DNA of 64,000 bases. It comes from Takakia lepidozioides (lineage: Eukaryota; Plantae; Bryophyta). Each line of letters starts with the position of its first letter. Within the stretch, counting starts at the first letter, position 1. A model generated the notes under the pieces. That model searched no databases, was not told the origin of the DNA, and saw nothing but the letters and a program-made list of their open reading frames with translations. Location: positions 59,148,001 to 59,212,000 of the forward strand of contig CM060733.1 in the NCBI GenBank assembly GCA_030704615.1, in the 5' to 3' direction. A program made the translations under genes and the position numbers. Shown here one piece after another: positions 10,621-49,640 of the stretch.

Positions 10621-12692
10621 CCCATACCTGATTATAGGGGCACATAGAGGACCTTGAGGATGATCTGAAGGGCCTACCTCTACCCTTGTAATTCCCTCAC
10701 AAAGATAGTGTCTGTTCCATTTGTTCCACCAAAACTGGGCACGGGGCCTATGGCCAAAATGCTACAACAAATATTGTCTTATGAGTACATGTTCAATTTT
10801 TTTTCTCAATCTTCACATGTGCTTTCCATGGCACAAGGCCGTAACAACACATTTGATTAATATATCAACTTCTGAAAACAACCTGATTTGTTTTTCTTGT
10901 GTTACCCTTGTGCAAAAGGCAATGCAAAAAAGGAGGAACTAGAAATTCCTGCAGCCAACCAGCTATCTGACTGGCAACCAATAACACAGGTCATCTTCCA
11001 GAGATAAGCAATCAACTTCTCCAAAGGAACCATCGACAACTTTTCCACTCCATACCATTCTGATTACTGAAATTGTCACAGTTCTCAGCAAGAAACTGTA
11101 CACTATCCTCATTGTCTTGCCCAGCAACCGGGCACATGGATTCCCTTCATCTGGACTGAGTTACAGGTAGAGAGAGAGGGAGATAATGCACTCATTGAGA
11201 CAACATTTTACCCCGTGCCGAGTTTGGGTGAAACAAGAGGGGAGGGAGGGAGAGAGAGAGATATGGGAGGAAGTTTTGAGAAAGGTATGAAAACGCTTCT
11301 CACCTTAGCAGAATTATTTGCAGCATGCACCAATCATATGAAAGTGAGGAGGCAGATCTGGGTACTAGAGACAGTTTGATGGTGCATAAATTAGGCTGTC
11401 TAATGTCGTGAAAAGAGGCAAACACAACACATTGTGCTTAGTGCAACAACTCCCTTCTGTGTTTACACATGCTCTGACATCTTTCCACCATCAATCAAAG
11501 CAATGATTGTGTCCGCATACAAAAACAACGCATACACACTTCAAGATCTTTTAACTGCCATTAGTCTCTTGCCCTTAGCAGAAATCCCAGCAACAAAAGA
11601 AGGTGAAGTGGCCTGACCTGGATCCATCACAGCCAACCAACAAACCGACAGGATAGTGATCTCTGTGGAACCACAGGCTTACACTGCTCCACACTTATTG
11701 TTGTTGTTATCCCTGCAGCATACTTGCAAAGAGAAGAGAGGTCAGGGAGGTCCTTTCAGCCAGCAGTAAGCACTGATTTCAGCCACACTCCAGAGGGAGG
11801 GGGTGGTGGTCTCCTAACAGTAAGCACCCATTTCCAAAAAGAAGGTGTCATGAGAGCTATGTATTCAATAAGGTCACATGTAGAAGCCCTTGGCTTGCAA
11901 TAGTTATCATAGAAGCTAGTCAAGTCCATGCAAACTCTTCACATTGTCCTCTGTATTTTTGTAGCCTTACTGAGGGTGCATCTACACCCACTCACATTCA
12001 ATCCGCGAGATAATAGTTGGTGAGGAGGGTTTCTATCAACACCAACTCACACACTCACCTATTATTATATGGTGGTCAATGGTGGAGGCTCCCCCACCCC
12101 ATGAGAGTGGGCACCCACTATGTCGGCTAAACTCCTATGTGGCAAACAGTCATTCATCATAAGCAAATAGTGGCAAAGATTTTGGTCTGTAAATGGAAAC
12201 TCCCCACCCGCATGGCCACCCTGAATGCTAAGTAGCGGATACAAGGTGAGTGGGTGTAGAGGTGAGGCCATCTTGATTGTTTTCCAGTTTTTGTTTAATC
12301 TTGGGAGAACCGTTGATAAATTTTCAGTGCTATTGTTGGATCAGGCCTTTGTTGATTGACAATGACATTGAAATGCCCCGTTGTCTGAAGCCATGCTTGT
12401 GGAGCTTTAGTGGTTGTAGCCTGGTGTATACGAGGCTGTGGTTAAAGCTATTGCTACTCAGCTACACACTTGGGGCTTTCACAGCGAAGTCCCAGATCGC
12501 CACACTTCAAATATGAGCATACACAGGAGGTTATTTGGTAAAGTAGAGCTAGCTACCAGGATGCAAGGTCGAGCACAATGGAATAGTGAATGGATACTAC
12601 ACTGTGGCTTTGATTCTGCTATGAGCAGCCTAGAAGAGACAAATGCTACATGGACAAACTTCTACATATCGTACATTAAGAAAAAGCCACAC

Positions 12693-13160
12693 CTTGCGAT
12701 TGCGGTTGTCGCACCATCGTGAAGGATCTTTAAAAAACTCATGCCAGCTCTGCTCCATGCTGCGAATTCAGGGCCGAGTCTGATGAAAGGGCAAAACAGG
12801 CTGAAATAGGTCGAAGAAGAAGGTGCCCTCACCACATTGTCCTCGACCTTGTGTCATGACCCATGGAGGATTTGACTGACCATGAACCCAAACGGACCTC
12901 TTGTGTGTGCTGCTTGTGTTTGTAGTCCGGTAATGTCGGATTGGTCCATGAGAACCACCACAGTGCAGCTGAGCGAGCAGAGACGCGACCTGCTAAGACC
13001 AAGCCGAGTCTCCGAAGAACCTTGTAAACAGCAGGAAGAATACCAAATCATGGTACTAACAGTTGCCAAGAGCCCACATTTGCAGGATGGACAAACTTCT
13101 TCACATCGCACATTGAGAAAAAGCCACACCTTGCGATTGCGGTTGTCCATCGTGAAGGTG
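12693..13160 (-). pseudogene. Duplicated OSB-type PDF-motif exons
   Basis: 13160-13130 PSRW-DNRNRK|gtgtgg; 12945-12693 TNPTLPDYKHKQHTQE(fs)WVHGQSNPPWVMTQ...MEQSWHEFFKDPSRWCDNRNRK|gtgtgg. The exon end plus intron start is duplicated (13088-13160 vs 12650-12725). Confidence 0.85.
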
Positions 13161-40580: not shown

Positions 40581-42400
40581 TTAGTTGACATAATGGCATG
40601 TACAAATGTAAAGTATTGTTTGATTTGATTGTTGACAATAAAGATTCACAGGCATATGGCCCTGTTGCAGAGGGAAATGCCCTCTCTGCGGCAGGTGGGA
40701 TGCCAGCAAGTATTCGACAACATCTTGTCTCTGCGTTCTCCCCCATGGCATCATCTTGCACCTATTTTCTGAACACTCCAATGCCCTAACAACCAAGGCG
40801 AGCCCTTCCCTGGTATTTTGGGTTATAAATTGTACACTCCATTGTTTTACTAAGTATGCCTTGCTGCAAAGGAGGGCCAGCTGCTGCAGATTGCATTGAA
40901 GAAGACCAACATGGTCAGGCTTTGAACAAACATACATTGTATCTATATTCTTTCAAGATTCGAAGAGCACAAGTTCTTTGAATGCTGCAACAGCAGCTGC
41001 CTGAGAAAACCAACTCATCTATCATGTTTGTTGTCAAGCATTGTGTTGTTTGTCTCTACACGGATCTGCTCTCGGCCTGCAGTCATCTGTCTTACATGCA
41101 CATACATCTCCTTTCCTAAGTAGCACGGGGTCCTCGAGCCTATCATAACAACATAACAACTCCCCGTTCATATCCACCCCAGGCTGATCGCACATGTACC
41201 AACAGCCCTCCGTGAGATAGATTTCTCTGCACACAAATAAGGTTGTGCTCCCACGGCATAGATTGTGAGAGGGAGAGAGGACCAAGAGCTCGATCTGCTA
41301 CATAAACAAGTCAGGTCGATCGCCTACATTGAAATTAAGAGGGATGAGTGCCCATCAAAATCACACCCAAGTCACAGCCGCTGCACCATGGAACCTTATC
41401 ATGGTTTATATCTGCAGAGATGTTATGCATTGTGTTCGAGGAGAGACAAAGCCATGTGACAACACGCCGATTGAGTCTAGATAAGGCAGGAAGCTCGCAG
41501 GAAGCTGGAACCATAGCTTTTTGTGTTACAACTTCCTGCGAGCTTCCTTCCTTACCTAGACTCATCGGCGTGTTGGACTTTTTCACGTAGGGACCCTTGC
41601 TCTGCCTGGAAATCCGAATCTTAGAAACCTTCAACATCTAAATGTACTCTAGACTAAATATCAAAGCGAGATGATGCTGAGCCTAGGCTGTTTAAGTCCA
41701 GGGAACACAAACTATATGTTCTCGATTTGAGTCTTCTTCGTGATGGATCCTCGAGATATGCTCTCGAGTCTGGACACCCGCTATTCACACCACACTACCA
41801 ACTGTTTCATTTTCGTGCAGGGACGGTACCATGCCCGGCTGCTGCTGTTGTGAGAGAGTGATCACACAGCCCAACTTACAGCTAACCGACGGGATCGAGT
41901 GCTACCTAGCTCCACGACTTTGCAACACTGAATATAGAACAGTGTCTGCAATAACTGTTTGAGCGTTATGGGAGTTGTGGCGCCCCGAAAGTGAAGGCAC
42001 CGTTCTGCCGTAAATGCGTTCGTAACTAACAACTCCTGTTTGCAGCCCATTCATCATCAGTTTGGACACTCATCAACACGATCCTCATAACCCAGTCTGC
42101 GCAGTGGCGCACTATGTGCCTGCATGTGAGCGTTATCAGAAGTTGTGGAGCCTGGAAACAAGTAAAGGCAGCAGGCTGCAGTAAATGCGCACTACGGCCT
42201 GCGTGAGTGCAGACCGAACGTCCAGCGAATCCCTCGCTGCACATGTTGACTTTGGGGCACTGCTCGTCAGAGAGATCTAGATCAATGGATAGAATATTCT
42301 GCTTCTACCTTGAGCTTCCCAGTTGGAAGTCTGATGGCATGTTCCAGTACTGCTGAGAAGATGCCTGTTTGGGGATGGAGTATCCCGTGAGCATTCATTA
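40581..42400 (-). CDS. Candidate multi-exon gene of unknown function
   Basis: A series of short AG/GT-bounded segments: QSKGPYVKKSNTPMSL|DINHDKVPWCSGCDL..|EIYLTEGCWYMCDQPGVDMNGELLCCYDRLEDPVLLRKGD. The full model was not resolved. Confidence 0.4.
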
Positions 42401-42614
42401 ACCCAGCTGGAGTAGATGGAGTAGATCCAGCTTTGCGATCCGGATCGAACATGATGAAAGAAGCAAGAAACCTGCCTATATTTTGTGCCACCCTTCACTC
42501 TTTTCAATCCAATTTTCCCGCCTCTCTATTCACAGTCCTGGCTCGCTCTCCAATCTGAGAGAGGCAGGATAAGTATAGCAGAGGTGAGAGGAAGGGTTTT
42601 TGCAAGCTTGGAAC

Positions 42615-43163
42615 ATGGCGGCGCTAGCTAGCGAGCGCGTCTTGACATGGCTGCTGGTGGGTGTGCTTGGGAGCGTTCTCATTGCTGGTAGCGAAGCTCG
42701 ATTGGACCTGGACACAAGGAAGCTCTGGGGATACTCCAGCAGTCCCCCTCCTCCATCTTCGCCATACTATTACACATCTCCTCCCCCACCTTCTCCTTCC
42801 CCACCACCTCCCTATGTGTACTCCTCTCCCCCGCCGCCTCCCTACGTCTATCCCTCTCCTCCTCCCCCATCTCCTTCCCCGCCTCCTCCCTACGTCTATC
42901 CTTCCCCTCCTCCCCCATCTCCTTCCCCGCCTCCTCCCTACGTCTATCCCTCTCCTCCTCCCCCATCTCCTTCCCCGCCTCCTCCCTACGTCTATCCTTC
43001 CCCTCCTCCCCCCTCTCCTTCACCACCTCCTCCCTACGTTTATCTCTCACCTCCTCCCCCTCTACCCTCCCCACCGCCTCCATACGTCTATCCCTCTCCT
43101 CCTCCCGTGTACTACTCTCCCCCAGTTCCTGTCACTTATCCCCCCCCACCTTCCGGTTACTAG
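42615..43163 (+). CDS. Extensin (HRGP) with signal peptide
   Basis: Hydrophobic N-terminus, then SPPPPSPSPPPPYVYP 48-nt repeats with YVY cross-linking motifs. Confidence 0.93.
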   Translation: MAALASERVLTWLLVGVLGSVLIAGSEARLDLDTRKLWGYSSSPPPPSSPYYYTSPPPPSPSPPPPYVYSSPPPPPYVYPSPPPPSPSPPPPYVYPSPPPPSPSPPPPYVYPSPPPPSPSPPPPYVYPSPPPPSPSPPPPYVYLSPPPPLPSPPPPYVYPSPPPVYYSPPVPVTYPPPPSGY

Positions 43164-44498
43164 GATGTCACCTCGCGGTAAGCTTCCACTTGGATCTCCT
43201 TTAGGATCTGAGTTTCCTTGTAGTGCTTCCTTTTGTTCCTTGGGCGAATCCACGATACTGTAGTATATTTCCGAACAATGCGTACTTCTGCAAGTTTCTC
43301 TTTGTAGATTGCTAGAGTGACCGCATTCAATACTTTGCTGTCTTCCTCTCCGTACATGTCTGAGTTTCCTGTTTTGGATGTCTACAGGCTGGTAACTGGG
43401 CCATTCCTTCCGAGTACGGATTCCGCTTTACTTTCGTATCGAGGCGATTTTCTCATTATCTAGCTTCCTTGTAGAACCTCTGACTCTCACTTATATCATC
43501 GGTTTTGTAAGCATCGAGTGATCGGCGAAGAATGGGGATAGCGAATTGTTGTAATTACCACAGTTTGAGGCGTCGGAAGTAGACGCATCCTTCAAATGTG
43601 GAAGATCAAATTACCAAAGGTAGCAACCATATATATGTGCAGTCCTAGCATCTCAATATATACATTGCCTAGTTACTGCTTGCAGGCCCGGAACTGATTC
43701 TATGAGGTAACTCGACAGTCCGCACTGCAGCTATAGAGGACACTCGCTGTTTCCAATATGAAACGGCCTTGAAGTCGGACAATTTAATAAATACCAGCTG
43801 GCCATGATGCCTGCTTTTGTAGCCAGCTTCTTGTTGCAGTGTTGAATGTATGATCTCATGTATATGATCAATTGTAAGCAAGTACTTCAACCCCTTCAAC
43901 AGATGTTCAGAGATATCTGTGTACGCTCTGTGGTTTCTAAATGTAGCTCGGGGATTTCTAGATTTGTAACATGCATGTGTAATCAGGATGCAGAAATAAG
44001 CTTGCAGTCGAAATAGGTGTTTACACTTTTGGTGTACTACGAGTGTCCCTGCCCACAATTCCCGCGAGTCATTCAGCTTGCATGCCAATTTGCTATTCAC
44101 AATCGTCTGATCTTGCTACAACGCACATGTGAATGTGGGTCTGCCTGCCAGCCTGCGAGTAAGCATACAACGCGTCAATTACCTGACCATCCAGGATTTC
44201 GGTATCAGCAGTGGCAGCAGCCTAATAATCCATACAGAAATTCGAAGACGAGCTGAAATTTTATAGTTTTGCCAGGAGGAATGTATATCCATCAATTCGA
44301 GGGCTCTGAGGTTGGTGTAAATTGTGACATGCTTTTGCATCTGCGCGGCGTGATAATAGTGTGTTACATGTGCGTTGGAGGACAAACTGAGCAGTTTTAG
44401 CAGCTTCTTGTCAACTGGTCAGTTATGCTCTTGCAATCTCACCTCTCACAGTCTCTCACGATCGTTGAGGTCAAGGGTCTTGGCCTTCTTCGAAAGAC

Positions 44499-44889
44499 GT
44501 AACAATGAGATGTCACCAAGGTGGCCACAAGGCAGGCTTTTGAGATGTATCAGCAAATACACTGACAGTCAGTCACCTGATGTTAAGATGCACTTGAAGC
44601 ACTTGATTGCTTAGTGCGAAGCCTCGCTATCTCTGTTTTACGTTGATTCTTTCTACTAAAGTTCCTCCAAAGCATAAAAATTCAGCCTAGTTATACTTCG
44701 TAAGATTTGTAATCATCTCATCAGTATACACTTCCGTGAAATCTCCAGTTTTGGTTCAAGAGAAGTCATGTTGCAAAAGAGCAATAACCCTGTCGCTCTC
44801 ATTACACCTTCCCATCCATGATATCACTAACTGATACATCTCAAAAGCCGCCCTTGTGGCCCCACCTTGGAGCGAAGTCTCCTTGTTAC
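44499..44889. ncRNA. PPR-derived inverted repeat; candidate MIRNA/hairpin RNA
   Basis: Arms 44499-44553 and 44831-44889 with a 19-bp perfect core (ggcttttgagatgtatcag / ctgatacatctcaaaagcc). 44536-44558 is 22/23 identical to PPR CDS 48118-48140. Confidence 0.55.
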
Positions 44890-46291
44890 ATTTCTGTATG
44901 ACCTGATTTCCCCAGCGCAAGATATTGTTACAAACTGGTGCGTTACGGTGTAGCATTGTCCACCCATTAGCTGTTCTATGCAATTGACTTTGTCATTGGC
45001 ATTCGCTTCTGCTGCATTTCGATCAAAGAAGACAGAGGAAGCCAAAAATTGCTAATACGATAACGACAACAAGAGTGCCGACGTATTCCCTATGGTGGTG
45101 GAATGAAAACTTGCCTGTAAATGTGTCCAGAGAGGGCACCCGCAGTTGGGCGACTGCGTTGAACAGTTTTGGGTTGAGAGAATCACATAACGTTTTACCG
45201 ACTTGCCGCCAGTACGATTGTGTTCTACGGAAATGCAAGTAATTAGACAACAGAGCTACACCCATGAATCACTGTTGTGGGGAATGCCTGGATTTTTTCG
45301 CAATCAGTCTGTTGAAGTGTTCAGAAGAATGCTTGCGCAAAGATCAGGAGTGCTGGTTAGTCCAGGACTCATGTTTGCTTCTTGCTTAACCCCTTCGTCT
45401 CCGCAGGTAGAGGTGGCAGCGCCTCTCGGGAGCGCGCAGGGAGAGGGCATATTCAAGTTCCTCGCGTCTTCTTGCGGTGAACGGCGTGAGGCTTCACTTC
45501 ATGTAGCAGATAAACGGGCCGATCTGTGAAGCTGAAATGGGTATCCGGCTTGGGAATGTTGGACCCCAGACCTTTGGGAGTCATGGCTATGACGCCTTCC
45601 CAGTCTCGTGTGAAATGGAAGAGAGGTGTGTTATGTAATTCTTTGCGTATTTCTTGTCCTTGACCCATTCCAGCAGAAAGGACACCCATCCCGACCAGAT
45701 TCCTCTAGGTTATGGTCCCAGAGGACTGTAAGCGTTACCACTTTTTCCTCCATCTTCTGAAATTTCTTGTATGCTAATCTTCCTCTCATCTCATGAGAGA
45801 CATAGGTACCTTTTTACTATGTGGAGTTTGTGGAAGCCATGACACGGTTTGCTCATAGCGCACGCAGTTTAGTTTTCAAGTTGAGCAAATCTGTGGGTGA
45901 AATCCGTTCAGTGGTGGTCAGCCCAGTTACGAACTCCCGCTCCTTAATGTCCAGGCGTACCGTGGATTAGACATCCATTGCTGCAGACCTCTGTATCAGT
46001 GCAGAGCGTAATCGCCAGGGATGGGGAGAGAGCCGAGAGAGATATACAGATTTACCATTCGCTGGGATACGAATGCCATGAGGCATTCTGCTCTGGGAAA
46101 TGAACCCTCCCGGATACATTTGTCGACACACAAACAGGGAGACTAAAAGTGCTTTTCTGCTACAGATGTGATACATGTCTGAGAGAAGAGAGAGAAAAAG
46201 AAAGAAGCTTGGACAGAGAGAAAGATAAGAACCATGCCATTATGAGAAGCTGATAAAGATTTATGGTTAAGCACTGGCATTTTCCATACAG

Positions 46292-46828
46292 ACTTCAGGA
46301 AATTGGAAGCTGGCAAAAGTTCTCATGTTCTAGCAGTCGTTGGACACAGATCAAAAACTCAGCAACAAACAGATCCTTCACAGTGGTGGGACAACAGGTT
46401 TACCAAGGTGAGGCTATCTTCATTTTGGATGTGATAGGGTTTTTCAAGGTGGATTGTCACTGAAGGCAGCACTATGACTGCAATTTGGTGCCTCCAGCCA
46501 GTCACCTAAATTACTGACAAATTGCTGATTTTTTTTTGTTGGGAAAAAGCAACAAAAATTAGATGCTCTCTGTAGGCTGCAGGTTCCCTGTTATTTGAGA
46601 AATGCTTGGGTTTTTGGTGGTCATAGCCTGGTCTTTGTGAGGCTGTTGTTCAAGTTCCAGCCCGCTCAGTTGCCCAGTGGTGTGTTTCGCAGAAAAGACC
46701 AAGATCACCAGACTTCAGGAATAAGCAGACAAGCAAGGGTTTGTCCAACCCTCCTTGGGCGAAACCAAAACTCTCTGCCATCGTACAAGGTCAAGCACAA
46801 TTTGGTGATAGCTGTAATGGAGCTTCAG
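46292..46828 (+). CDS. Two exons encoding an OSB-type PDF motif, upstream of the PLS-PPR exon
   Basis: 46292-46407 (catacag|...QQQTDPSQWWDNRFTK|gtgagg) and 46693-46828 (ttcgcag|KRPRSPDFRNKQTSKGLSNPPWAKPKL...ASG|gtcaag). Both are open and join in phase 0. Confidence 0.75.
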
Positions 46829-47067
46829 GTCAAGAATGCAATGGGTATTGTCTTGATGATAGTTGAAGGATTCAATTCAAAACAGGTCGAGTTGGTCCAG
46901 TGAACCCTGACTGTAGTTGACTACAGTGGTTTTCTGACCCTGTTAATGTGGCGCAAGGACCCGGGCCTCATGAACAGATCCACCTTTGCTGTATCTAGGA
47001 GCTTTGAGATACAGTGTGCGAGTTTGAGTTTTATTGGCTTAAAACTAACAGTTTGAAGTCATGCAGG

Positions 47068-49368
47068 ATGCCAGGGTTGAATCAAGCACAGGTTTTTCAG
47101 TCGGGTAACTTCAGCCTGACCACTGCACTTCACAGAAGACAAGGAGAGGGAGTAAAGATGAACTCCAGCACTTCTGAGGATGTGAAGACACTATGTAAGG
47201 CAGGACGACTGAAAGATGCCCTGCACATTTTGAACCTACGAGGCATGTCAACAGACACCAATACTTATGTGTGTCTCTTGCAAGAGTGCATCAGCATTAA
47301 AGGGCTAGCAGAGGGAAAGCAGGTGCATGCCCACATTCTCCTGAGTGGATTCAAGCCAAGCATCTTCCTACTCAACTCCGTTGTCAACATGTTTGCCAAG
47401 TGTGGGAGCTTAGTCGCTGCACGCCAAGTGTTCGACACAATGTTTGAACGAGATGTGTCTTCCTGGACTACAATGATTGCAGCATACGCGAAGCATGGGC
47501 GCAGTAGGGAGGCTTTCAAGATCTATGACGATATGATACAGGAAGGGGTGACGCCCAACAGGGTCACATTCATTTGTGTTCTTAAGGCGTGTGCCAGCCA
47601 AGGAACCCTGGAAAAGGGAAGGGAGGTCCATGCTGAGATCATCAAAGCTGGACTTGCGCCATACATTAATCTGGATAATACCCTTATTAACATGTATGCC
47701 AAATGTGGGAGCATGGAGGATGCACGTCGAGTGTTTGATAATATGGCTGAGCAAGATATTGTCTCATGGAATGCAATGATTGCAGGATATGCTCAGCATG
47801 GGTGTATGAAGGAGGCTTTCGGCATGCACGAGGAAATGATGCGGGAAGGAGTGGCACCCGACAATGTCACATTCATTTGCATCCTCAATGTGTGCGCCAG
47901 CCTGGCAGCCCTGGAGAAGGGCAAGGCAGTCCATTCTGACATTGTCAAGGCTGGACTTGTGTCTGTTGTCAATTTGAATAACACCCTTGTTCACATGTAT
48001 GGGAAGTGCGGGAGTGTGAAGGATGCACGCCAAGTGTTCAACAACATGGCTCAGCGAAATGTGATCTCATGGAATGCGATGATTGGAGGGTATGCTCAGC
48101 ATGGGTATGGTAGGGATGCTTTTGAGATGTATGAGCAAATGATATGGGAAGGGGTCACCCCGAATAAGGTCACATTCATTTGTGTCCTCAAGGCGTGTGC
48201 CAACCTGGCAGCCCTGGAAAATGGCAAAGCGGTCCATGCTAATATCATTCAAGCTGGACTTGGGCCAGATATCATTCTGGAGACTGCCCTTGTTGACATG
48301 TATGCCAATTGCGGGAGCGTGAAGGATGCACGTCAGGCATTTGAAAACATGGCTCAACGAGATGTGGTTTCGTGGAGTGTGATGATCACAGCATATGCTC
48401 AGCATGGGTTTGGTTGGGAGGCTTTCGAAATATATGAGCAAATGGTAGAAGAAGGAGTGATGCCAAACAAGGTCACTTTCATTTGCATTCTCAATGCGTG
48501 TGCCAGCCTTGCAGCCCTGGATAAGGGCAAAGCAGTCCATGCTGACATTGTCAAAGCTGGAATTGCACTGGATATAATTCTGGGGACTGCCCTTCTTGAC
48601 ATGTATGCTAAATGCGGGAGCATGCAGGATGCACATCATGTGTTTGACAATATGGCTCAACGAGATGTGGTTTCATGGAGTGCAATGATTGCAGGATATG
48701 CTCAGCATGCCTCTGGTAAGGAGGCTCTCGAGATGTATGAGCAAATGAAAAGGGGAGGGGTAACACCTGACAATGTCACGTTCATTTGCATTCTCAATGC
48801 GTGTACCAGCCTTGCAGCCCTAGACAAGGGAAAAGAGGTCCATGCTGATGTTGTCAAAGCTGGCATTGTTTCCTATATTAATTTGGATAATACCCTTATT
48901 GACATGTATGCCAAATGTGGGAGCATGACAGATGCGCAAGAAGTGTTTGACAATATGTTTAAACAAGATGTGGTCTCATGGAGTGCAATGATAGCAGGGT
49001 ATGGTCAACATGGGTTTGGTAGGGAGGCCCTCCAACTATTTGAACATATGAAACAGGAAGGCTTGAAGCCGAATGATATCACCTTTGTATCACTTCTCTC
49101 TGCATGTAGTCATGCGGGCCTAGTGGAGGAGGGCTGTCACTACTTTGATTCCATTAGTGAAGATCATGGCCTCACTCCCACAGAGGAGCATTTTGGCTGT
49201 ATGGTGGATCTACTTGGCCGCGCAGGGCAATTGGAAGAGGCAGAGGACTTCGTTAACCAAATGCCGATCGAACCTGGTGCTTTGGTGTGGGGGGCCTTGC
49301 TTGGTGCATGCAGAATTCATGGTGATGTTGAGCGAGCAGAACGCGTGGCAAAATGTCTTGTGACGTAG
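47068..49368 (+). CDS. PLS-class PPR protein (organellar RNA-editing factor type), ends after E1
   Basis: Five P1-L1-S1 triplets (303-nt period), then P2-L2-S2 (HFGCMVDLLGRAG) and E1 (VWGALLGACRIHG). Premature TAG at 49366-49368. Confidence 0.93.
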   Translation: MPGLNQAQVFQSGNFSLTTALHRRQGEGVKMNSSTSEDVKTLCKAGRLKDALHILNLRGMSTDTNTYVCLLQECISIKGLAEGKQVHAHILLSGFKPSIFLLNSVVNMFAKCGSLVAARQVFDTMFERDVSSWTTMIAAYAKHGRSREAFKIYDDMIQEGVTPNRVTFICVLKACASQGTLEKGREVHAEIIKAGLAPYINLDNTLINMYAKCGSMEDARRVFDNMAEQDIVSWNAMIAGYAQHGCMKEAFGMHEEMMREGVAPDNVTFICILNVCASLAALEKGKAVHSDIVKAGLVSVVNLNNTLVHMYGKCGSVKDARQVFNNMAQRNVISWNAMIGGYAQHGYGRDAFEMYEQMIWEGVTPNKVTFICVLKACANLAALENGKAVHANIIQAGLGPDIILETALVDMYANCGSVKDARQAFENMAQRDVVSWSVMITAYAQHGFGWEAFEIYEQMVEEGVMPNKVTFICILNACASLAALDKGKAVHADIVKAGIALDIILGTALLDMYAKCGSMQDAHHVFDNMAQRDVVSWSAMIAGYAQHASGKEALEMYEQMKRGGVTPDNVTFICILNACTSLAALDKGKEVHADVVKAGIVSYINLDNTLIDMYAKCGSMTDAQEVFDNMFKQDVVSWSAMIAGYGQHGFGREALQLFEHMKQEGLKPNDITFVSLLSACSHAGLVEEGCHYFDSISEDHGLTPTEEHFGCMVDLLGRAGQLEEAEDFVNQMPIEPGALVWGALLGACRIHGDVERAERVAKCLVT

Positions 49369-49640
49369 GCTCCAAAGGACTGCCTATGTACGTTTTGCGC
49401 AATGGTCAATCATGTATTGTGCGGGTATTCAAGCAAAGTTGGCCAAACAATTAGGACATGGGTTTCAGGAAGGAGCCAGGACGGAGCTGCCTCTGGTGTA
49501 GGAGTGAAAGGAATCTTCTTTTTGCAACCACAGTGAAAATTTAGCTGTTGGATTTGGACTCATCACCACATCTGTGTGATGCCTATCCACTTCACCAAAA
49601 GCCTTAGGGTACCTCGTCACTGACACACCACTACCAGCAA
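49369..49640 (+). pseudogene. Degenerate E2/E+/DYW deaminase remnant
   Basis: MGFRKEPGRSC (PG box, 49458-49490), KESSFCNHSENLAVGFGLITT and KSLRVPRH*H (compare HSEKLA and KNLRVCxDCH), with deletions and frameshifts. Confidence 0.8.

Follow-up and report, generated by a model that had tools for sequence, protein, structure and literature searches.

A probable PPR-derived fold-back upstream of a PLS-PPR gene in Takakia: relic, or raw material for a small RNA?

About 2.1 kb upstream of a PLS-PPR open reading frame in Takakia, in intergenic DNA, two short stretches resembling part of that reading frame face each other as an inverted repeat. Is this a MIRNA gene directed against the family from which its arms seem to come, as an original prediction made from the DNA had proposed? 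Is it a less regular source of small RNAs, or a leftover of rearrangement among PPR genes? The reading favored here, with a probability of about 0.8, is that the locus is a fold-back derived from PPR sequence that has not (yet) become a canonical miRNA gene; the first part of that statement taken by itself, that the fold-back is real and PPR-derived, is very probably right. All positions refer to the window, that is, the whole 64-kb stretch of DNA that was analysed.

Structure and origin of the inverted repeat

The features on which the argument depends are the following:

44499..44553: left arm of the inverted repeat; PPR-gene sense on the + strand
44535..44553: left half of a perfect 19-bp helix, with its partner at 44831-44849
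44554..44830: spacer (“loop”), 277 nt; folds like its shuffles and, alone, is without significant PPR similarity
44831..44889: right arm of the inverted repeat; PPR-gene sense on the - strand
44510..44558, + strand: left copy of the PPR-like segment; aligns to CDS 48092-48140 and overruns the arm into the spacer by 5 nt
44810..44869, - strand: right copy of the PPR-like segment; 82% over 34 nt to 48112-48145, with 20 aa resembling PPR residues 362-380
47014..49368, + strand: adjacent PLS-PPR ORF, 784 aa, which stops in the E region

A repeat search of the window locates the core of the inverted repeat at 44523-44553 / 44831-44861 (31 nt, 94% complementary, 277 nt between), and blastn against the window extends the arms to 44499-44553 / 44831-44889 in a 59-column alignment at 83%, with two 2-nt indels. 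The total length of the fold-back is 391 nt, including the spacer of 277 nt. The arms of ~55-59 nt around a 277-nt loop described in the original prediction are therefore present where they had been placed. Both strands of 44480-44910 fold far below their shuffles: the + strand reaches a minimum free energy (MFE) of -129.7 kcal/mol (z -6.4), the - strand one of -154.3 kcal/mol (z -7.8), with 0 of 100 dinucleotide shuffles as low in either case. The spacer alone folds no better than its shuffles.

Within the stem, a perfect 19-bp helix is followed by a 2x2 internal loop, 10 further pairs and then a more broken lower stem. When a tetraloop is put in place of the spacer, the stem has a duplex energy of -80.9 on the + strand (50 bp, 1 G:U) and -85.1 on the - strand (6 G:U); the predicted extension of the minus-strand stem through G:U pairs thus exists, and is modest. 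A slightly better minus-strand stem would fit a transcribed minus strand. On this fold, a clean miRNA/miRNA* duplex could sit only in the 44535-44553 / 44831-44849 helix. The best-kept part of the stem is exactly its PPR-complementary part, as expected of a selected miRNA/miRNA* duplex. Selection on the stem was considered and is not put forward: it is not claimable from one locus, and a 19-nt perfect run is not unusual at such divergence, its chance probability in 59 nt at 83% identity being roughly 0.2 by our own estimate.

The derivation of the hairpin from PPR sequence, also part of the original prediction, is upheld by both arms, which match the PPR CDS in the same register, each in sense on its own strand. 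The 23-mer at 44536-44558 has one mismatch to 48118-48140 (the 22/23 match first noticed), three to 48724-48746 and three to the right arm, and no matches to it are expected by chance. By blastn within the window, the left arm matches CDS 48112-48140 at 26/29 (E 8e-5) and the right arm matches 48112-48145 at 82% over 34 nt (E 1e-3). Gapped local alignments score above shuffles for both (z 3.7 for the left arm, 4.3 for the right) and carry the likeness of the left arm to ~49 nt (44510-44558 against 48092-48140). At the protein level, 16-20 aa per arm resemble PPR residues 362-382, the “YAQHG..AFEMYEQM” junction (tblastn, E 3.5-6, alone not significant); a Pfam search of five local ORFs gave no match.

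Which PPR unit was copied? The two arms are 79-83% identical to each other, and an arm is only 57-71% identical to any of the six PLS units of the adjacent ORF over the homologous 60-nt segment. The arms also have states in common that none of the six neighboring units has. Being each other's closest relatives, they represent a true inverted duplication of a PPR fragment, whose direct parent is other than the present neighboring PPR unit. The left half of the spacer has no PPR similarity (z -0.2), and the right half has a weak, out-of-register one (z 2.1, with a flank control at z 2.45). An account of the whole 391 nt as two decayed 195-nt PPR pieces was dropped, since the spacer halves lack convincing PPR likeness.

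Several other true inverted repeats occur in the 64-kb window. One, at 41460-41576, is a compact, near-perfect hairpin of 117 nt with a ~52-bp stem and an 8-13-nt loop, whose MFE over the 117 nt is -82 kcal/mol (+ strand) or -88 kcal/mol (- strand); in shape it is much more like a pre-miRNA, or a palindromic MITE, than the PPR-derived hairpin is. Two more, at 11981-12260 and 12557-12858, lie inside a second, decayed PDF+PPR locus and have 24-26-nt arms with spacers of 228 and 254 nt, a spacing similar to that of the PPR-derived hairpin.

The adjacent gene and predicted target sites

The adjacent PPR ORF contains six PLS units. A weak DYW-like remnant lies 3' of its stop (49368), in another frame, at 49427-49573. 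Judging from the stop in the E region and the DYW-like match in another frame, the gene appears truncated or frameshifted, and the DYW end of the adjacent “target” seems to be missing. In a word search, the PPR protein found 7940 PPRs, the best of them 35-54% identical (lycophyte, fern, moss, gymnosperm); no same-species paralogue was recognisable among these 7940.

For the prediction of target sites, every 21-mer of the 3' arm of each possible transcript was scored against both strands of the window, with 1 for a mismatch and 0.5 for a G:U pair, both doubled at positions 2-13. The upper 3' arm is the reverse complement of 44528-44560 if the minus strand is transcribed, and 44830-44856 if the plus strand is. 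Two sites in the adjacent ORF emerge:

48110..48142, + strand: best predicted target site; motif AFEMYEQM; score 2-4
48722..48748, + strand: second, marginal predicted site; motif ALEMYEQM; score 4-5, minus-strand-derived 21-mers only

Throughout the upper 30 nt of the 3' arm, every 21-mer register, from either strand, scores 2-4 on 48110-48142, so that the predicted antisense competence is robust, holding whatever the strand or register. The 21-mer originally proposed scores 2 on 48119-48139, its sole mismatch being a G-G at position 7. None of the other four units of the adjacent gene has a site scoring 5 or less, and neither do the two decayed PPR loci elsewhere in the window. The related sites that had been listed for the hairpin do exist as homologous motifs, at 47510, 48421 and 48724, but only 48118 and, marginally, 48724 are complementary enough. 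The suggestion that the motif could be targeted in every PLS triplet was overstated: only one or two of the six units of the adjacent gene make plausible sites.

Transcription, miRNA criteria and copy number

What might such a locus be? It is a single-copy inverted duplication of ~50-60 nt of PLS-PPR CDS that straddles two motifs, the first represented by its end and the second by its “AFEMYxQM” start, with the two copies facing each other across 277 nt. Turnover in a PPR-rich region most likely produced it, as a by-product of fold-back or template switching, and the chance that it is still just that, a silent or functionless relic left by PPR cluster turnover, is put at slightly better than even. 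Such a silent by-product is more likely than a proto-MIRNA or hairpin-siRNA locus. The hairpin stands at the “raw material” stage of MIRNA birth by inverted duplication of future targets, a route known in plants. If either strand were transcribed, Dicer-like enzymes would be expected to cut the imperfect ~60-bp stem into two or three 21-24-nt duplexes, and a product of the 3' arm, if taken from its upper 30 nt, would then be antisense to PPR mRNAs with this motif variant.

Much turns on transcription. On one side of the hairpin is an expressed, spliced extensin-like gene (42555-43824, with SPPPP/YVY repeats, exact RNA contigs and an intron at 43177-43386, GT..AG), whose transcript ends ~675 nt before the hairpin. 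On the other, 45251-45519 is transcribed (exact RNA contig) and adjoins a dispersed repeat at 45483-45627, which has several genomic and RNA copies at ~83-85%, on both strands; local ORFs at 45251-45627 have no Pfam match. No sequencing run on record as RNA contains the hairpin stretch; only DNA runs of the likely source sample do. The runs listed for the organism include no small-RNA library. One run, taken as RNA by guess, was confirmed as such by a spliced contig that skips 43177-43386, with its GT..AG ends. This run has exact contigs on 42555-43824 and 45251-45519, and none on 44499-44889; nor does any of its contigs bridge from either neighboring transcript into the hairpin. Its only signal near the hairpin consists of non-identical contigs at the inner end of the left arm, coinciding with an excess in DNA (see below); these are probably transcripts of PPR paralogues. 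The absence of RNA contigs does not show silence, since poly(A) libraries seldom capture pri-miRNAs and since the Logan contigs searched are built on 31-mers, too long for the 21-24-nt reads of small RNAs.

A possible though doubtful alternative to the silent relic is a hairpin-siRNA or proto-MIRNA locus: weak transcription of one strand, perhaps through read-through, would be followed by imprecise dicing of the whole stem into 21-24-nt siRNAs, some of which would act in trans on PPR transcripts. An intermediate stage of this kind has been described (PMC1790633; Fahlgren et al. 2007), and the present stem has room for two or three dicing phases, with an antisense competence that is independent of strand and register. 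Also in favor of this reading, the expressed extensin-like gene ends 675 nt upstream on the + strand and the transcribed segment 45251-45519 lies 360 nt from the hairpin; the lack of any RNA contig on the hairpin, or bridging into it from these neighbors, speaks against it.

The more specific model of the original prediction is a canonical, lineage-specific MIRNA: from a minus-strand transcript, DCL1 would release a 5'-U 21/22-mer (the reverse complement of ~44536-44557) that cleaves PLS-PPR mRNAs at the P-motif. This is improbable. The plant MIRNA criteria tabulated in miRScore (PMC12594335), after Axtell and Meyers 2018, are one miRNA/miRNA* duplex with 2-nt 3' overhangs, at most 5 mismatched nucleotides in the duplex, and at least 10 exact reads and at least 75% precision in one library; a precursor longer than 300 nt incurs a warning, not failure (PMC12594335). 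The perfect 19-bp helix within the imperfect stem, flanked by the 2x2 internal loop and 10 pairs, keeps the duplex within the mismatch limit, but the fold-back of 391 nt, with its 277-nt spacer, exceeds the 300-nt guideline. The proposed 5'-U 21/22-mer is indeed antisense to a PPR P-motif site, with its score of 2 on 48119-48139, but its three initial U residues fall inside a 5-nt asymmetric bulge of the minus-strand MFE structure, which registers 2-3 nt further down the stem escape; its standing under the bulge rule of these criteria thus varies with the register. Precedent is on the side of a MIRNA: arms that resemble a protein-coding family, with a product complementary to that family, are found here as in young, target-derived Arabidopsis MIRNAs (PMC1790633), PPR families are small-RNA targets in eudicots (PMC5902766), and a hairpin in a Marchantia PPR transcript gives a self-targeting miRNA (PMC4788410). 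Several local observations weigh more heavily the other way. No exact RNA contig lies on the hairpin and no RNA run contains the stretch; the arms, being copies of an internal piece of coding sequence, brought no PPR promoter with them; only one or two of the six units of the neighboring gene qualify as sites, in a “target” whose DYW end appears to be gone; and none of the miRNA families of Rfam 15, searched over 43500-46000 at E up to 10, matched the hairpin. The arm core had 0 matches among the metagenome contigs scanned.

The copy number of the locus bears on whether its arms are simply the ends of a mobile element. One 3.4-kb DNA contig, from the DNA run probably behind the assembly, covers 42990-46300 unbroken, and the right arm and spacer have no extra DNA depth at 80% likeness, which together make the locus unique. 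In the bin 44532-44658, where the left arm's PPR-like inner end runs into the spacer, DNA contig depth is 137 against a baseline of 25; by bin ratios, the pieces in excess appear to start near 44526-44529, which would fit PPR paralogues with similar motif sequence. No direct repeat (TSD) was found flanking the arms, and blastn finds no further copies of the inverted repeat in the 64-kb window. The original prediction had named genome-wide recurrence of the arms with TSDs as the mark of a MITE, and this came out negative, the locus being unique in DNA contigs and without a flanking direct repeat. A MITE or other transposon with terminal inverted repeats that resemble PPR by accident is therefore barely credible, despite a MITE-like layout, in which short inverted ends enclose a few hundred nt, and the presence of another dispersed repeat close by (45483-45627): a single unbroken genomic contig spans the locus, extra depth at 80% likeness is confined to the left arm, at its PPR-like inner end, and spares the right arm and spacer, the arms have neither a flanking direct repeat nor a second copy in the window, and both match PPR in register and in sense.

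Comparison with known systems

In its present state, the PPR-derived fold-back cleanly illustrates the opening step of MIRNA birth, the target-derived fold-back. That is an already known kind of structure, to which this locus is an additional example. The more far-reaching idea is that an inverted PPR fragment gave an early-diverging bryophyte with greatly expanded PLS-PPR editing factors a small RNA of its own, either a miRNA or a hairpin siRNA, which damps part of the family through the P-motif. This is unlikely; if true, the control of PPR genes by miR161/TAS1-2/miR7122 in eudicots would have a convergent, independently evolved counterpart, the first to be aimed at the editing-factor (PLS) class. 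To our knowledge, the organellar RNA-editing class of PPRs is not a known miRNA target. Were small RNAs made from the hairpin, it would be shown that large and fast-evolving PPR families, the editing class among them, have come under small-RNA control several times over, and independently, in land plants.

The closest parallels to the Takakia fold-back are among the MIRNAs of Arabidopsis, where 16 non-conserved loci have arm-to-gene similarity, miR161 targets PPR genes, and MIR163 seems to have kept the promoter of the gene it arose from (PMC1790633). As in such inverted-duplication MIRNAs, the resemblance of the Takakia arms to a protein-coding family extends beyond the would-be mature RNA (PMC1790633), the predicted 3'-arm product is antisense to the family, and the family concerned is PPR, as for miR161. 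The Takakia fold-back differs in its greater length (391 nt), in having no copied promoter, in that its small RNA is a predicted one, and in the PPRs concerned, which are of the P class in eudicots and of the PLS type, the editing-factor class, in this bryophyte.

Among bryophytes, the MpPPR_66 transcript of Marchantia polymorpha has a stem-loop that yields the self-targeting Mpo-miR11692.1 (PMC4788410). Both are hairpins of PPR gene sequence, with a product (in Takakia a predicted one) complementary to PPR mRNA; the Marchantia hairpin, however, lies inside a PPR-SMR mRNA and has small-RNA and degradome reads, whereas that of Takakia is intergenic.

In eudicots, PPR families are controlled by TAS1/TAS2, miR7122 and miR1509 cascades (PMC5902766). 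The miR173-TAS1/TAS2 and miR7122/miR1509 cascades would share with the Takakia hairpin the principle that a conserved, repeated motif gives access to many PPR members (PMC5902766). The eudicot phasiRNA cascades depend on 22-nt miRNA triggers and on RDR6/DCL4.
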